Of a stretch of 64,000 nucleotides of DNA, positions 11,628 through 28,807 are shown piece after piece. How positions within the stretch are numbered: position 1 is the stretch's first letter; each line of letters opens with the position of its first letter. The position numbers and the translations under genes were made by a program. The notes below the pieces were generated by a model. It saw only the letters and a list, made by a program, of their open reading frames with translations. It had not been told where the DNA came from and made no database searches. The DNA is taken from contig JBLDXI010000001.1 in the NCBI GenBank assembly GCA_047495785.1, positions 3,596,001 to 3,660,000 on the forward strand, in the 5' to 3' direction. The DNA comes from Lepidodermella squamata. Lineage: Eukaryota > Animalia > Gastrotricha.

Positions 11628-14600
11628 TTGAGAAAGAACTTGGGAATCGGTTCTGCTGGTTCAATGGCCAACGCGTTGAAAATGATTGGTGCTGCTAACA
11701 AATCTTTCCAGCAATCTCGGTTACAAACTGTCTCGGCATCTGCAACAAATATTGGCTCCTCTTCAAACAATGCGTGTCGCGGCATCCTGAAATCGGCACA
11801 AGCATTGCGGGAAACAGGTCAAATAGTAACAATGTTTGGCCAAGTCGGCTTGCTTCAGTGTTTGAGTAGAGGCAATTTGATGCTCCATTTCAACGCTAGG
11901 GATGTTTCTGGAACTGGCTGCTCAAACCTTAACGCTGGTGATATTCTTGAAATGTCGATTACGTATGATCCAATGACTGGCAATCCGTCACCTCGAGACT
12001 TGATCAAAATATCATCGAATTCCGAAGAACGCGACATAGTGTCCGAATCCCGTTTGCACGGTGTCGTCTTAAGCGTTCCAAAGCCTGGTAGGGCGGGATC
12101 TGGAGATTGCAGCAATTGCGGTCTCATATGGTTTCAATTCAACGGCGTTAGTTACGAGCTGCCGTTCTTTTACGAAGATTGCGAGCACCCAGGTTTCGTT
12201 AGAATTCAAGACTACGTCTCGTTTCACATCAAGCGTCTCTCCGATGGTTCAGTTCGAGCGGTCAAAGTGGCCATGGGTGTTCATCACCGAGCAGCACCGA
12301 TTTCTGCGTCTAACCATAGCGCAACAGGCTATGTGTACGGTAGAAACATGGCTTGTCCGGGGCAAGCAGCTATTCGTGGGACTGTTCTTCGCACGTACAA
12401 AGGTGACCACATGCGCATCGATGAGGATGCATTTCAATCGTCTGGGTGTATCATTTGCGAGCCGATGCCTGGGGTAAATTGTTTCTTTCTGTACATCTTG
12501 TTGACTAATAATACTTTTGTCCAGGTGGCTTTCCACTATCAATTCTTTCAATGCGACGTTGGAGGCGCTTCTTTGATGCCGGGCGATGTGGTAATCTTCA
12601 ACGAATTGCCAGTGTGTCCCGGGAACCTGAAACGCGCCGCTAACATCCAGCTGTTATGTGAATCTTTCACGAAGAACACTGAACAACGAATCGCTGGGCG
12701 AGTCGTCAGCTATTCCAGTTCTACTGGCTGCGGTTTCATTCGCTCTGAAAAATTTGAAAAAGTTGAATTTTGTATTACGGAAAGCATTGATCCAGCCTGG
12801 CAACCAGTTATTGGCAATGAAGTTGAATTTACCATGTCAAGCAACGGCCAAGCTATGCGAATTCTAGTTCTACCGCCTGGATCTGTTGATTTATCAACCA
12901 CCGCTGCTTCAGAATTGTCATCTGGCGTGGTTATTCGAGTTCCGTCAAGGCTCGGCACTCGAACCAAACCAACGTATGGATCAATTTCGGTTCTAAATAA
13001 AACAGCTCGTGGAAGCCTTTCCGTTGAATATGAAGCTGATGCAATTATTGGATCGACGATTCCGAAAGTTGGCGATTCTGTTGAATTCCAACTGATTTTT
13101 CAAAACGGTCGTGAATTGGCCTATGAGGTTTGCGTCACGATCTCAGCTTCGGAATCGAAGCCGAGCGAAGGTTTTATAGCCACCTTGAAGGATTCTTACG
13201 GCTTCATTGAGAACTCTGAACACACCCAGGAGGTATTTAATTAGCTGATTGCTGATTTCATAGGATAAATCATCATTTTCTGACAGATTTTCTTTCATTG
13301 CACGTCGTTTTTCGGCGATTTTTCGACCTTGACCGTTGGCGAAGAGGTCAAATATACCGCAGTTTTGAAGGAAAAACGTCTTGCCGCTTACGGTATTTCT
13401 CGAGTCGAACGCGGTACAGTAAATCCAGAGGTTTTGGTCAACGAAACCGTCTACGAAGGTGTTATTGAACGGCCGTTACGCCTCGTCGACCCAGCTCAGC
13501 ACGAATATTCCGGAATCGTTCGTCTCTACCGAGATGGCGTCGAGTCTGACGAATGGTATGAATACGGCGTGACTGGTCTAGCTGATCCGTGTGATTTTTT
13601 GCAATGCGGAGACGAAATCACCTTCAAATTGGCTCGGGTCGTCAAAAACGGCCAGTTGCGTGCTACTTGCGTTGCTGGGAAGCGCAAGTTTGAACAATCC
13701 ACAGTGATCGTTGTCAAGGTAAACATACTATCAATTTTCTAATTTTTCGATTGAAATTTGACCTTGATTTCAGGACAAATATGGATTTTTGGATGTTGAT
13801 GTTCCGTCGATGAACAGCTGTTTTAACTCGCCCGCAAGTCCGAACACCAGTGGCGGCAGTATGTCGGGTCGAAAGGTTCCAAAATTGATTGAAATTTGCG
13901 TATAAAGTCTCAATTTGTTTCCTCATTTATAGCTTTTCTTCCACATGACCGAAGTTCATAAAGTGGACGGCAGTTCTTCTTTGAAAGTTGGAGATCACGT
14001 CGAGTAAGTTTCTAAAATTCTTTGAATCCTTTTACGATTTTTCAAGTTTTTACCATTTAACCCATTAAAGCCCAGAATGTTTTCGGAAAATATTTATATT
14101 TTTCTTTCCCTATTGACACGTGCTTTTGCGATAGAGAAAAATTCGGGGATTAAGAATATGAAAACCGCATATTTTTATCATCTACCGTTATTGAGATGTT
14201 CCAGTGTCAAGTTGTCACGTGACCTTACCTTTTGTCACACCTTGACGATTATCTCAAGAACGGTGATAGCTAGGAGAAGAGAGCTAGGAAGCCGCTCTCA
14301 AAGAAAAAGTTCATCAGCGCGATGAGATCTATCTAGAAATGCATTCAGTTGGGTCATATGTGATACTTCGTGCAAAGTCGATTTTGAGGACACTTTAGTG
14401 CAGTTTGGTGACAGTCCCAAAAAACGGCTCCTAGCTCATCACCAAGCCTACGAGACACTGGTCATTTATCCGTTTTTCCCGAATTTATACGATTTCCCAG
14501 CACGGAGATATGCCTTTTAGACATCCTGGGGTTGTAGTCACCCTACAGGATTTTTTAAATATAGGGTGGCAGGAAAAGATGCCGTTGGGCTTTAATGGGT

Positions 14601-22467: not shown

Positions 22468-22772
22468 ACCCCCTTTCTTCAGAAGTGGTTGTTTCTTGTT
22501 CGGTTCTTTTTTCTTGCCATTATTGATTTCATGATCTGGATACTTGCATGTTACTTATACATTCTTGAGATATCAGGTAATAAGGTATTTTGCGACTTGC
22601 GACCTTATGCTAACTAGTTATTCCTGACTTCTGAATTTAATTCTCTCTGATTTATCCCCACTTCGTACCGCACTTCCTGCGGTAACTTGAAATTATCTTT
22701 TCACTGCTGGAGGACATTAAATGTTTCCTAAAAATGTTGCGCCGCATAAGCCAAATAAGGCTGGAGTCTTAA

Positions 22773-22955: not shown

Positions 22956-25900
22956 TTATCTGCAATACTTCTCGTAGGCAATATTGATTTTCTCCAAGGT
23001 AGCGGGCCCTGTGTACATGCTTGCTCGACCGAACAGTAGCCGGTCCAAATCTGCTTTCGCGCATTTCGTCTCATTTCTGGGGCACTCGCACATCAAGTGT
23101 TGAAGCAGCAGCCAATTCGAAGGCTCGATGCCTTGAGCACCACACCATTTGCAGATGACCTTCTCCTCCCTCCGCTGGTTCACATAAACACTTACGCCAA
23201 AAGTCGAGTCAGTTCTTATGCATAATAGCGTTCTGCCTAATTTCGGGCCCAAATCTTTCAAATACCGTTCGGCGTAAGAAGCCTCACGCGATACAGGGTT
23301 AATCGACCACAACCGTGAGCCTTTGTCCTCTTCGTTCTCCTTTCTTGCGATTGCCGTGTACATGTTTCTGACAACAGCCTTCGCGGCGGCCGCGTTAGTA
23401 CCAGGTTTCGTCAGGCCGTTCAGTCCGATGTTTCCTAACTCCAACTCCGCCCTATGTACCTTGTTGTACATTTTTCGTGACATTGACATCAGCTGTGTCA
23501 GGTATGCTGCTTGCAACAGACTATCGTCACTCGACGTCTTCATTCGAAAATAAAATCTAATCGCGCAGTTTTTTCTCTCCGTATTCGCGTCAGGCAACCA
23601 GAGCTCTCTCTCCAGCAACCTTTGGCTGGTACATGTAGGCAGTCGGTAAGCTCTCTTGATCACCCTACAATGCAAGGGCGGAATAGCTGATTGCCTATCC
23701 AGGCCCCATAACTCCGCGCCGTAAAGTCCAGCCGCCAGAACGACCCCCTTATACAGTAGTCTGAGACTTGCAATCGGCAACTCGTTAAATTTTTCAAATA
23801 AGCTTGGCAAGAGCCCGGTAAGCCTCAGCAGCTTCAGTCTACTTTGGCGGATAGCCTCTTTGAAGGAAAGATCCTCGGAGAACCAAACACCCAAGTATTT
23901 AAAAATACTGACCTTTTCCAGCTCGACGTCGCCAAAGAACAGCGGTTTCGGTTCAGCTTCTTGTTCGCCGAAAATGACGTACTTCGTTTTCCGTCTGTTG
24001 ACTGTCAACCAGTTGTCTTTTTCGTACTTAAGCAGTCGATACAAATAGCCCTCCATTTCGTGTCGATGGGCCGACAGTATGACCACATCGTCTGCGAACA
24101 GAATACACCTCACGCTCTTGATGCCGAGAGGCAAACCAGCTACGCCTGGCATTTCCAGCGCTTCTTCCAGGTCGTCAATATAGACGCAAAACAACAGCGG
24201 CGACAGAGGGTCGCCCTGCTTCACCCCATCGTGAACATCGAAGGTAGCCGAGATCTCATCGCCCACCGATACCGCCGCCTTTGTGTCATCATACATGTCA
24301 CGTAGCATGGCAACGAATTGAAGCGGCACGCCACGTCGTTCGAGCTTCTTGAACAAAAGGTTGCGGTTGATCTTGTCGAACGCCGAGGAAAAGTCGACAA
24401 AAGTTGCATATACACGTGGATGACGCTCGCGCCAGTAGGCCATAGCAGCGTGCAGGACCATTGCCGCGTCTAATGTTGAGCAGCCTTCCTGGAATCCAAA
24501 TTGGCACTTTTGCAATTTCGAAAACAGACTGAGCCATTCTCTCAACCGAACATCCAAAATTTTCGAGAAAACTTTTGCAATGCAGGGTTGCAGTGATATC
24601 GGTCGGTAGTTGTTCGGGTCATTCGAGTCTCCCTGTTTGAAGACCGGTACTATCAAGGCGGTTTTCCACGCTTTCGGGTACGGTTGCCCGTTCAAAATAC
24701 CAGTGTAGATCTTGCTCAGCATCGGAGCCATAACGTCAATGTTAGCTCGGATATGTTGATATCCAATACCATCAAGGCCAGACGCAGATACGCTAGCACA
24801 TCTCTCAATCGCAGCTTTCACTTCATCAACCGAAATCGGATCTAGAATCATTTCCCTTCGAATCACACGACCATCGGGTAATTTCACCGAACTCTCGCTG
24901 GGCTTCATCGCATTCATGAATGGGTTGGACCAAGCACTTAGAGCATCCAGTTTGATCAATTTGGTGGGGACACCGTCGTCGATAGCAATTCGCTTCACTG
25001 CAGTAACAGTCACTTTCTCACGGGTAGCAGTCGGTTTCTCTTCGGCATATGGTTTTCCACCTCCTAGTGCTTTCATCAGGTGACAACGAAAAACTTCTAC
25101 CGGCGGCATTTGCTGTCTTCCTTCCTTACGCTTCAGCTCCCAGACCTTGTTGGGCTTTTCGACTAAGCATTTCAACCTAGCTTCATCAGACAAACGCGCC
25201 AATTTACTCGAGCGAGGAGCGACATTAGCAGCCGTAGCTTTCGGTTTTCGCCATTTCCAGTTAAGTTTCCGCGACTTTTCTGCCACTGATACGAGCTTTT
25301 CTGACATCGTTGCAACAGACTCATTACCCGTTAACCTTTTTGCCAAATCCTGAACCTCCAGCTTGAATAGCTGATCATCAATGTGAATTCGATCAAGGAC
25401 CGGGCTCTCGAAAGTGATTGTCACCACCAGCGAGCTGTGATCAGAGATACTTGAACGCTCCACCGCCATTTCTTCAATCAGTTCGAAGCTGTCGAGATCT
25501 ACCAAGGCATAGTCAACAACCGAATTACTTGCCGGACGGGTGACAGAGCGGCTCTTTTCAGGTGTGACTCTTCCGTTCAAAACAATCAAATTATAGCAGT
25601 TAACAAACTCGACAAATTCAGCTACCGAGTGGCCATTTCTCACATTGTCATCACTTACTCTTTTGGGTAGCGTTTCACAAATTTCTTCGGGGGCGTCTTT
25701 CTCCTCACCGAGACGGCTGTTAAAGTCACCAAGGAGCAGCACGGAGTCGTGGTTGCCACTTAATTCTCGCATTTTATCGTTGAATTCCTCCCAGCAAGTG
25801 GAGTCTTCGTGGCGATACAGCCATCCACACAGAACTTTGCCTCTAACTGATGTGATCGATAATGCCAATGCATATGCTGTTTCCCATACGACCCGACATC

Positions 25901-26123
25901 TTTCTGCGAGATTCTTCTTTACGTATACCACATTGCCGCCAGATAGCCTACCCCGGCCCACGCGTTTTCCAGGAGATGCAAACTTTTCGTAACCTTCAAT
26001 ATCTGGTAACACATCTTCATACTTCCAGGTTTCCATGAAGCCACACATGCTGCTGTCCTTCACCATTTTAGTCATTACTCCCAACTTCTCAGTGCAGTAG
26101 CCTTGGATGTTGGCACACCGCAC
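22956..26123 (-). CDS. LINE ORF2: AP endonuclease, reverse transcriptase, C-terminal CCHC finger
   Basis: APE motifs (ANIQG, METW, LGDFNSR, VVDY, SDH); RT motifs (NYRPISL, QFGF, FVDFSSAFD, GVKQGDPLSP, LFADD, KYLG); CKWC...HLMCEC. Confidence 0.95.
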   Translation of the reverse strand: MRCANIQGYCTEKLGVMTKMVKDSSMCGFMETWKYEDVLPDIEGYEKFASPGKRVGRGRLSGGNVVYVKKNLAERCRVVWETAYALALSITSVRGKVLCGWLYRHEDSTCWEEFNDKMRELSGNHDSVLLLGDFNSRLGEEKDAPEEICETLPKRVSDDNVRNGHSVAEFVEFVNCYNLIVLNGRVTPEKSRSVTRPASNSVVDYALVDLDSFELIEEMAVERSSISDHSSLVVTITFESPVLDRIHIDDQLFKLEVQDLAKRLTGNESVATMSEKLVSVAEKSRKLNWKWRKPKATAANVAPRSSKLARLSDEARLKCLVEKPNKVWELKRKEGRQQMPPVEVFRCHLMKALGGGKPYAEEKPTATREKVTVTAVKRIAIDDGVPTKLIKLDALSAWSNPFMNAMKPSESSVKLPDGRVIRREMILDPISVDEVKAAIERCASVSASGLDGIGYQHIRANIDVMAPMLSKIYTGILNGQPYPKAWKTALIVPVFKQGDSNDPNNYRPISLQPCIAKVFSKILDVRLREWLSLFSKLQKCQFGFQEGCSTLDAAMVLHAAMAYWRERHPRVYATFVDFSSAFDKINRNLLFKKLERRGVPLQFVAMLRDMYDDTKAAVSVGDEISATFDVHDGVKQGDPLSPLLFCVYIDDLEEALEMPGVAGLPLGIKSVRCILFADDVVILSAHRHEMEGYLYRLLKYEKDNWLTVNRRKTKYVIFGEQEAEPKPLFFGDVELEKVSIFKYLGVWFSEDLSFKEAIRQSRLKLLRLTGLLPSLFEKFNELPIASLRLLYKGVVLAAGLYGAELWGLDRQSAIPPLHCRVIKRAYRLPTCTSQRLLERELWLPDANTERKNCAIRFYFRMKTSSDDSLLQAAYLTQLMSMSRKMYNKVHRAELELGNIGLNGLTKPGTNAAAAKAVVRNMYTAIARKENEEDKGSRLWSINPVSREASYAERYLKDLGPKLGRTLLCIRTDSTFGVSVYVNQRREEKVICKWCGAQGIEPSNWLLLQHLMCECPRNETKCAKADLDRLLFGRASMYTGPATLEKINIAYEKYCR

Positions 26124-26162
26124 TCGCCACCTTTCTTCTTCTTTGTTTTCCCTCTCCCCCCG

Positions 26163-26586
26163 TCATAGGCGACGTGGGCGGAAGTGACCATCAAAGACGG
26201 TCGCATCCTCGTCACTGTCGACAACCTTCTTCGTAGTCGGGTCATAACGCAGTCGCGCAATGCCTTGGTCGTTGACCACTCGCAACCTCATGCTGCGGAC
26301 CTGGAAATAGCTGGTGCCCTCCACTTTATTTGGGTTTCTTCGCTTGCCCTCTTGAACGAGAGCTTTCTCAGCCTCCATAAGGTTCGCCGGCACAAAGCGG
26401 CGCATCCTAACGCCGTTCGGCAGTTCTTTCGTCATGTCCTCCAAATTTTCATTGGTGATCGCGCTGTTGACAGGGACCACCAGTATCGGGCGGTTGCTGT
26501 TGTCTTTCTTGAGACCCAGCCGACGGGCACGAAAGAAGACACCCTGCAGTCGCGGCACCGCTGTTTTCACAGCGTTGATCAGAGTG
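26163..26586 (-). CDS. LINE ORF1, C-terminal portion (5'-truncated)
   Basis: Open up to the 5' junction at 26586; RARRLG...NRPILV resembles the ORF1 RRM/CTD region of CR1/L2/RTEX-group LINEs. Confidence 0.75.
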
Positions 26587-26896
26587 ACCCCCTTTCTTCA
26601 GAAGTGGTTGTTTCTTGTTCGGTTCTTTTTTCTTGCCATTATTGATTTCATGATCTGGATACTTGCATGTTACTTATACATTCTTGAGATATCAGGTAAT
26701 AAGGTATTTTGCGACTTGCGACCTTATGCTAACTAGTTATTCCTGACTTCTGAATTTAATTCTCTCTGATTTATCCCCACTTCGTACCGCACTTCCTGCG
26801 GTAACTTGAAATTATCTTTTCACTGCTGGAGGACATTAAATGTTTCCTAAAAATGTTGCGCCGCATAAGCCAAATAAGGCTGGAGTCTTAATTTTG
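26587..26896 (+). repeat. 310-bp direct repeat, copy 2 (target-site duplication of the LINE)
   Basis: Identical to 22468-22777; starts exactly where ORF1 is truncated. Confidence 0.93.
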
Positions 26897-26998
26897 CATT
26901 TATTTACCAACATAATGTCTGTTTAGGTTGTTATTGTTGTTGTTGATCCCTTGGACAGTTTATATTGTTACTTTGTCGTTGAGTTTTGTTTCACCTGG

Positions 26999-28807
26999 AT
27001 GACAACATTAAAGCCGGGCGATTACCGGATATTGACTTCCAAGCAAATTGAATCCGATATGGATACCTTATCAAAGCTGGACTCAAAAAAGGCAAGCAAG
27101 GATGCTAAGAAAGATAAATCCAAAACATCACACTCGCCGAAAGGTGTGATGGGCAAATGGGTCTCTAAAGAAAAAACTCGGCCGATCATCTCGCCACCGA
27201 GTAACTTCGAACACACAGTTCACGTCGATTTCGACCCTGTCGTTGGTGAATTTGTCGGCATGCCCGAAGAATGGTTTAGAATTCTGAAAGGCTCGAACAT
27301 TAGCGAGGCGGAGCGAAAGCAAAATCCTCAGGCTGTTGTTGACGCGTTGAAATATTACACAGATAAAGGTCGAGGCGCTTATGGATCAGCTGAGCAGAAG
27401 TATATGACGAATGTGCAACACTCGTTTGCTTCGCTAGACGGCGGTTCCAACAAACTGTCGAATCCTTCGTTAGACGAAGAATTATCAGCTGGAACAAACA
27501 ACGGCGACTCCGATGGAGAAACTCGCGATGCCCCGCCTCGAATCCCCGAAAGGCCGGCCAAGACCTTGTCAATCTACACCCGGCCTGTTGATAACGAATA
27601 CGTCGTTGGTCATTCAGCTCAAGATGTTAACCCCTTAGCCGCTGTTGGTCGGGCTAATGGCAGTAAAAAGCGCATGACCGACGAAGAAGTCATGGAAAGA
27701 CTTCGAGCTATCGTTTCATTCGGCGACCCGAATCGGAAGTACATAAAACTCGAAAAAATCGGCCAGGGCGCGTCGGGTTCCGTCTTCATCGGCCGCGAAA
27801 TCTCAACAGGGCGAGAAGTCGCGATTAAACAAATGAAAATAGGTCAGCAACCGAAGAAGGAGCTTATCCTCAATGAAATTTTGGTCATGCGTGAAAATAA
27901 GAACGCAAATATTGTCAACTATCTCGACTCGTATCTTGTGAATGACGAATTATGGGTCGTTATGGAGTACCTGGCCGGCGGTTCGTTGACCGATGTCGTC
28001 ACGGAAACAATAATGGACGAGTGTCAAATTGCAGCCGTGTGCCGTGAATGCCTGCAAGCCCTCGAGTTTTTACACGAAAATCAGGTGATTCATCGAGACA
28101 TCAAGTCAGATAATATTTTGCTTGGCCTTGATGGCTCCGTGAAGCTGACCGATTTCGGCTTCTGCGCTCAACTATCGGCCGAACAGGCGAAACGGTCGAC
28201 TCTAGTCGGAACTCCGTATTGGATGGCGCCAGAAGTTGTGAGGCGGCAAGCGTACGGACCGAAAGTTGATATCTGGTCATTAGGTAATTACTTGAAAATT
28301 ATTCCGGTCAACCTGAAACGAAAAGAAAATTGGAGTATCCTAGAGGTCTCAAAATTAGAAATTCAAAAATCCTCGAGAATTACCCCCATTTTTCTTTCAA
28401 TTTTCATTTGGGCAAAATTCTCGCTCTCGGCAAAATTCTTCAATCTGACCTATTTATTGGCTAATTTATTCATTTTTTTGCACTTAGGTGTGATGTGCAT
28501 TGAATGTGTTGACGGCGAACCGCCATATCTGAACGAAGACCCATTGCGAGCGCTGTACTTGATAATGACCAACGGCAAGCCTGAATTCCGCAGCCGGGCC
28601 CAGTTGTCGGCCGAATTTTCCGATTTCCTCGACCGTTGCCTCGAGGTGGACGTGTCGCGGCGCGCCTCGGCCACCGAGCTCATGCGCCACCCGTTCGTCA
28701 AAAAAGCGAAGCCGCTCGCCTCACTGCGCCCGCTCATCCTCGCGGCGAAGAAAGTGCGCCAGGGCTCGGCGGGCCCGCAGCAGAACACGGCCGGGCCTAT
28801 TCGTTGA
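26999..28807 (+). CDS. PAK: Group I p21-activated kinase (PAK1/2/3-like)
   Basis: [20 protein letters not shown], autoinhibitory EFVGMPEEW...QNPQAV, PIX-binding PPRIPERP, kinase [31 protein letters not shown]; intron 28284-28487. Confidence 0.96.

Follow-up and report, generated by a model that had tools for sequence, protein, structure and literature searches.

How the bicistronic RNA of a long interspersed nuclear element (LINE) yields the product of its second open reading frame (ORF) has been in question for a long time, and to our knowledge only reinitiation-type mechanisms have experimental support. The question is raised by a LINE of the gastrotrich Lepidodermella squamata that lies on the minus strand of a 64,000-nucleotide stretch of genomic DNA (GenBank assembly GCA_047495785.1, contig JBLDXI010000001.1, positions 3,596,001 to 3,660,000 of the forward strand), hereafter the window. 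In this element ORF1 and ORF2 are open in one and the same frame, a single UGA followed by CGG stands between them, and no in-frame AUG precedes the endonuclease domain of ORF2. How, then, does the ribosome reach the endonuclease? Comparison with related elements across the same genome favours programmed readthrough of the stop to yield an ORF1-ORF2 fusion, a reading on which our confidence is evenly balanced.

Coordinates throughout are those of the window, the junction and both ORFs are read on the minus strand, and A denotes the window element's own family. The junction sequence quoted in the first-pass annotation of this DNA is matched exactly at 26170-26099, with one UGA-CGG between the in-frame ORFs. 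ORF1 is open from 26586 to 26166, and these 140 codons are its 3′ part only, as the copy is 5′-truncated and lacks the 5′ untranslated region (UTR) and the first ~136 codons including the AUG. The ORF1 stop, the candidate recoding site, is the TGA at 26165-26163, and the adjoining CGG codon at 26162-26160 completes a hexamer classed as a type II readthrough motif (PMC13517186). ORF2 follows at once, running from 26162 to 22959 (1068 codons) with its own stop at 22958-22956. It encodes an APE-type endonuclease, a reverse transcriptase at about 23883-24617 and a C-terminal CxxC...H...C motif at 23076-23153, and Pfam recognises Exo_endo_phos and RVT_1 (E 3e-31) within it. The ORF2 head, 17 codons without AUG (26162-26112), leads to an AAC codon at 26111-26109 that specifies the catalytic Asn (N18) of the endonuclease within an A-N-I-Q-G motif. 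Endonuclease regions from 11 families were combined into a profile, in which N18 and E44 are invariant. Its best solved match is the human L1 endonuclease (E 1.5e-8), where the two residues fall on N14 and E43. Given the alignment of N18 to catalytic N14, translation must begin upstream of N18. The first in-frame ATG of ORF2 is codon 30, and a start there would cut away an essential part of the enzyme. The first-pass annotation was thus right that no in-frame AUG precedes the first endonuclease motif, and right also that the AUG overlapping the stop (AUGA, 26166-26164) is out of frame with ORF2 and closes early, after 25 codons.

Copies of family A on contigs C21, C9 and C1 extend about 500 nt further 5′ than the window copy, and that on C21 carries a full AUG-started ORF1 of 276 aa in frame with ORF2. 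Over 3783 nt the window copy is separated from that on C21 by two substitutions and a single 3′UTR indel, and such near-identity means that family A moved very recently. This recent mobility, taken with the completeness of the C21 copy, indicates that the UGA belongs to a working design and not to a decayed copy. All 5 copies of family A keep the stop, as do its sister families L030, L034, L035 and C33. Where a family is represented by two or three intact copies that are nearly identical, as several are, every one of them retains the stop, and in no copy is the stop position occupied by a sense codon.

The same layout recurs throughout the LINE complement of this genome. A search of the genome (121 Mb) with the endonuclease region returned many LINE loci with a long open ORF2, and the in-frame single stop was found in 13 of 13 lineages, a count that covers every lineage with a readable junction. 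The stop and the codon that follows it are UGA in A (CGG), L030 (CGG), L034 (CGU), L035 (CGA) and the decayed C33 (CAA); UAG in L041 (GGA), L042 (GAA), L043 (GAU), L045 (GAC), L046 (GUU), L052 (GUU) and L059 (GAU); and UAA in L056 (GUA). With ORF2 identities of 24-55% between them over about 750 aa, the lineages appear to be old. Upstream of each stop an open stretch of 200-420 codons runs in the same frame directly to the stop. These stretches are real ORF1s, which start with AUG wherever the locus reaches far enough. One half of each is coiled coil, and all have a motif resembling Y-F-Q-I-R-G and, at the end, the motif F-D-x-x-F. Across the lineages the ORF1 tail beyond F-D-x-x-F measures 3-19 residues and the ORF2 head up to the catalytic Asn 10-82 codons, always in frame, so the linker has gained or lost sequence many times while its frame never changed. 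The heads of L042 (82 codons) and L043 (79 codons) contain no stop in frame 0 and 4-7 in each other frame, and that of L042 has no ATG in any frame. Most families have neither an AUG nor a conserved near-cognate codon in the ORF2 head. Common to all of these diverged lineages, the layout is, on this comparison, more than chance.

Such uniformity is not a general property of related elements. Among the contigs of seven relatives from other organisms, each about 30% identical, L063 and L065 have ORF1 and ORF2 in frame with a single UAG between them and no AUG ahead of the endonuclease motif. L061, L067 and L068 have an AUG-started ORF2 with a spacer or overlap, L066 has ORF2 in another frame, and L064 is uninformative for layout. 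The mixture among similarly diverged LINEs suggests that layout is labile when unconstrained, which makes its constancy in this genome meaningful.

The context of the stop is equally regular. The base after the stop (+4) is C in 6/6 UGA lineages although the codon to which it belongs varies (CGG, CGU, CGA, CAA; Arg to Gln), and it is G in 8/8 UAG/UAA lineages (assuming independent lineages and 31% G, P is about 9e-5). A +4 base that is fixed by stop type while the codon changes looks like selection on the nucleotide and not on the amino acid only. C is the leakiest base that can follow UGA (PMC13517186). In the Beier-Grimm scheme, type II motifs are UGACGG or UGACUA, as in alphaviruses and coltivirus, and the UGACGG of the window element and two relatives is an exact type II hexamer, which bears out the first-pass identification of UGA-CGG as a viral readthrough context (PMC13517186). 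Type III motifs are UAGGGV, UAGGUA or UAGGAU, as in Moloney murine leukaemia virus (MoMLV) and walleye dermal sarcoma virus (WDSV), and usually need a downstream structure (PMC13517186). Exact type III hexamers occur in L041 (UAGGGA) and in L043 and L059 (UAGGAU), and three in seven UAG families has a P of about 0.013 given ORF codon usage.

It is the combination of a frame conserved through linker changes, a layout that drifts in the outgroups and leaky stop contexts, UGA-C especially, that favours readthrough. ORF1p, comprising a coiled coil, an RRM and a C-terminal domain (CTD), would be made from its own AUG, with most ribosomes terminating at the UGA. In a small fraction a near-cognate tRNA would read UGA-CGG and elongation would carry on in the same frame, giving an ORF1-ORF2 fusion of about 1345 aa and about 150 kDa that carries both endonuclease and reverse transcriptase, in the way that gammaretroviruses make Gag-Pol. 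How leaky the stop is would determine the proportion of one product to the other. We infer from the comparison that readthrough occurs at some such rate and that the fusion is the active form of ORF2. The first-pass annotation had proposed that ORF2 is made as a gag-pol style fusion rather than by reinitiation. In-frame access through the ORF1 stop is strengthened by the comparison, but the exclusion of reinitiation does not hold, and termination-reinitiation remains a serious rival.

Several observations weigh against readthrough, beginning with RNA structure. The first-pass annotation had proposed folding the downstream 150 nt; for the stop together with the 100 nt after it, no stable structure is predicted. 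The minimum free energy (MFE) of this segment in the window element is -18.1 kcal/mol (z -0.2), and across the 13 families z ranges from -1.6 to +2.6 with no significant stability, so MFE folding without pseudoknots gives no sign of the extended stem-loop or pseudoknot that type II and type III signals usually have, with a start near +9 to +16. Long-range pairing does not fill this gap in the window element. Its longest inverted repeat joins a purine-rich tract at +5 to +27 past the stop (26158-26139) to a pyrimidine-rich tract in the 3′UTR (22867-22844), a candidate long-range partner with a homologous tract in the C19 sister family, and the post-stop tract ranks 2/360 windows as a partner of the 3′UTR. 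The pairing energy is, however, reached by 23/500 and 97/500 shuffles, and other ORF2 purine tracts also pair with the 3′UTR, so the complementarity is explained by purine/pyrimidine composition. The stop contexts do not all point one way either, as UAG-G alone is a weak readthrough context (PMC13517186). Tca2, a long terminal repeat (LTR) element with an in-frame gag UGA, gave no readthrough in reporters, a caution that an in-frame gag stop may look plausible in context and still fail such assays (PMC7175516). The decayed relative C33 has an in-frame AUG two codons past its UGA. Lastly, the 13 lineages share a homologous ORF1 and are not fully independent samples.

Much of this can be turned to the account of AUG-independent termination-reinitiation, in which the 40S subunit would stay after the ORF1 stop and restart at or next to the following codon to give a separate ORF2p. 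We regard this mechanism as possible, if some way short of probable. In its favour stand the lack of a predicted stimulatory structure downstream and the in-frame AUG of C33. G after UAG or UAA is generally a good termination context, and it fits efficient termination followed by restart. The window element is also L1-like in its ORF1 fold and endonuclease, and an unconventional termination-reinitiation model has been published for human L1 ORF2 and for SART1, as described in a review (PMC5972666). What reinitiation does not need is a shared frame, yet 13/13 lineages keep one through repeated linker changes while the outgroups vary. Nor does it sit easily with ORF2 heads that mostly offer no AUG or conserved near-cognate codon, or with C after UGA, which is the leakiest context and not the best terminator.

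Internal non-AUG initiation on ORF2, independent of ORF1 translation and dependent instead on an internal ribosome entry site (IRES)-like element or a shorter transcript, is improbable. An IRES has reportedly been proposed for mouse L1, and A (GUG), L030 (CUG) and L034 (GUG) do each have a near-cognate codon at the fourth position ahead of the Asn. This position, however, encodes a conserved hydrophobic residue of the first endonuclease β-strand and is GUA in L035 and different again in the UAG families; a conserved residue with a varying codon makes the position structural and not a start site. Internal initiation would also leave unexplained the shared frame, the single stop and the long AUG-free heads of L042 and L043, and no structured region is predicted.

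Removal or redefinition of the stop by other means, for example through a suppressor tRNA of the host or through A-to-I editing that turns UGA or UAG into UGG, is less probable still. UGA, UAG and UAA are all found at this site, A-to-G changes would convert any of them to UGG, and a long-range duplex could recruit an editing enzyme, but the duplexes predicted here begin between +5 and +13 and thus leave the stop outside. The sole contig of a possibly-RNA run that crosses the junction shows the TGA unchanged, a further point on that side, albeit from a contig that is silent on expression level, editing and translation. Coupling through the overlapping AUGA, or a frameshift from its AUG into the ORF2 frame, is scarcely credible and was rejected, because the AUGA of A, L033, L030 and L034, for all its resemblance to the UAAUG stop-start of SART1 (described in a review, PMC5972666), offers an AUG that is out of frame with the endonuclease domain, closes early (after 36 codons in L030) and is missing in L035 (GUUUGA), C33 and all UAG/UAA families. 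Selenocysteine insertion at the UGA was dismissed since sister families have UAG or UAA at this very position. Inspection of the ORF1 tails by eye showed no 2A-like NPGP motif.

Long-range pairing has a stronger candidate outside the window. In the C19 sister family (L035+L020, G000:C19:2444034-2449462), which has about 52% protein identity to A and a different sequence at the site, positions +13..+26 pair with a 3′UTR segment at 13/14 positions. This segment ranks 1/356 windows as 3′UTR partner and beats shuffles (3/500 and 0/500), and a second helix can form between a purine tract at +52..+80 and the pyrimidine tract homologous to that of the window element. We treat the C19 pairing as a lead and not as a result. 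The L063 outgroup gave no post-stop/3′UTR signal (rank 11 of 398). Pairing between the junction of L030 (C11 family) and the 3′ fragment L015 was not used, as the 3′ end is unclear and the two are perhaps not one subfamily. In the tombusvirus carnation Italian ringspot virus (CIRV), an interaction between distant parts of the RNA is required for UAG-G readthrough. C19 is similar in that a segment 3′ of the stop is significantly complementary to the 3′UTR more than 3 kb away, but differences remain: the complementarity of the window element is compositional only, and no local stem-loop that would present the sequence was found. A bolder version of the readthrough model would have the whole L1-like LINE radiation of this genome express its reverse transcriptase as a readthrough fusion with viral stop contexts and, in at least some families, use pairing between the stop region and the 3′UTR over more than 3 kb as a stimulator or switch in the manner of tombusviruses; this we consider rather unlikely as a whole. 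The 3′UTRs of A and C19 differ in their tails, (CAT)n in A and (TATCG)n in C19. They share the pyrimidine tract and, after it, the motifs C-U-A-U-G-U-U-U-U-U-A-A and G-A-C-C-A-A-U-C, and these shared elements are possibly a recognition region for the reverse transcriptase.

To which class of LINE does the element belong? Its closest proteins outside the genome are about 30% identical, none exceeding 31%, and gave no clade name. ORF1 matches no Pfam family, and single-sequence searches of ORF1 and the endonuclease against PDB and Pfam returned nothing useful, so identification of both relied on profiles and a fold search. An AlphaFold (AF2) model of ORF1, built from an alignment of eight family ORF1s at a mean pLDDT (predicted local distance difference test score) of only 72, predicts long helices or a coiled coil, an RRM-like β-α-β-β-α-β unit and a C-terminal β domain. 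The ten best PDB matches of this model in Foldseek are all human LINE-1 ORF1p (2ykp, E 4e-6). ORF1 is thus a full-size L1-type protein with no esterase; in RTE elements ORF1 is rudimentary, and in some RTEX elements it is of an esterase type (PMC3905857). The ORF2 reverse transcriptase scores similarly against the L1 and R2 enzymes in PDB, and assignment of the element as L1-like rests on the ORF1 fold and the endonuclease profile, not on a reverse transcriptase tree. The RTEX label given in the first-pass annotation is not supported, since both of these features match human L1 best. As a variation within the group, the ORF1 of L041 (G000:C9:4072377-4075994), a UAG-GGA family, lacks the long coiled coil of the other families and has two tandem C-terminal Y-F/Q-I/V-R-G ... 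F-D/N-x-x-F modules.

The element therefore shares with mammalian LINE-1 a predicted coiled coil-RRM-CTD ORF1p, an APE-type endonuclease with the same catalytic Asn and Glu, a reverse transcriptase, a C-terminal Cys/His motif and the occurrence of a 5′-truncated copy. It differs in the absence of an inter-ORF spacer and of an ORF2 AUG, in its single in-frame stop, in its (CAT)n or (TATCG)n microsatellite tail instead of poly(A), and in its low sequence identity to L1. SART1, a Bombyx LINE of the R1 clade, is similar in its bicistronic RNA, in the lack of a spacer between ORF1 and ORF2, and in an AUG that overlaps the stop, here in some copies. In SART1, however, ORF2 opens at the overlapping AUG, whereas the AUG of the present element lacks conservation and lies in another frame than ORF2, with no structure predicted downstream.

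The layout is closer to viral recoding. As in gammaretroviral Gag-Pol (MoMLV, UAG-GGA with a pseudoknot) and in alphaviruses and coltivirus (UGA-CGG or UGA-CUA), a nucleic-acid-binding structural protein and a polymerase lie in frame with one stop between them. The viral hexamers recur exactly, UGACGG in the window element and UAGGGA and UAGGAU in its sister families; the polymerase ORF lacks a start codon of its own, and the fusion would be expected at low abundance. Unlike these viruses, the element has no predicted pseudoknot or extended stem-loop at +9 to +16 and no protease to release the polymerase, and it is a non-LTR retrotransposon that uses target-primed reverse transcription, with readthrough proposed from its sequence. 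Among LINEs, readthrough of an in-frame ORF1 stop has been suggested from consensus sequences for one group in Paramecium (PMC5405496). Those group 3 elements differ in having a ciliate host with a reassigned code and a zinc-finger-type ORF1, and belong to an unrelated LINE clade. In the literature we found neither an experiment that puts readthrough to the test in any LINE nor a report of an animal LINE radiation that has the in-frame single-stop layout. What appears to be new here, as a claim by comparison, is a retrovirus-type recoding layout in an animal L1-like radiation.

If readthrough does operate, recoding would set the ratio of structural protein to polymerase in LINEs as it does in retroviruses and some LTR elements, and an ORF1-ORF2 fusion would offer a simple physical basis for cis-preference. 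With more than 12 intact, diverged L1-like families that have an in-frame single stop in virus-like contexts, this genome offers a natural comparative series. Annotation pipelines that require an ATG-started ORF2 would miss such elements or mis-annotate them as inactive.

The window element spans 26586 to 22768, ending in a 188-nt 3′UTR (22955-22768) with its microsatellite tail. It is flanked by a perfect direct repeat of 300 nt, found by repeat search, whose upstream (26587-26886) and downstream (22468-22767) copies are 100% identical and abut the LINE ends exactly. If this putative target-site duplication is one, it is unusually long for a LINE. Three partial copies of the family, 95-97% identical, lie at L003 (G000:C21:2583929-2584580) and L004/L006 (G000:C9:1816980-1818515). 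Of the part of the element present in the window they contain only the first ~674 nt (the end of ORF1, the stop and the first ~80 ORF2 codons), and share one internal endpoint, equivalent to window 25920; they may represent a deletion derivative that went on to multiply. Contig C9 has a full copy and one such partial copy in inverted orientation.

On the plus strand beyond the insertion, an open frame of 618 codons (26951-28807) encodes a PAK-like kinase with a P21-Rho-binding domain (Pfam E 1.5e-22) and a protein kinase domain (5e-67). Only ~65 nt lie between this frame and the end of the LINE with its duplicated flank, which places the insertion in the upstream region of the gene. Elsewhere on the plus strand, a 538-codon open frame at 11628-13244, with weak cold-shock-domain (CSDE1-like) matches below Pfam thresholds, is probably a host gene exon.

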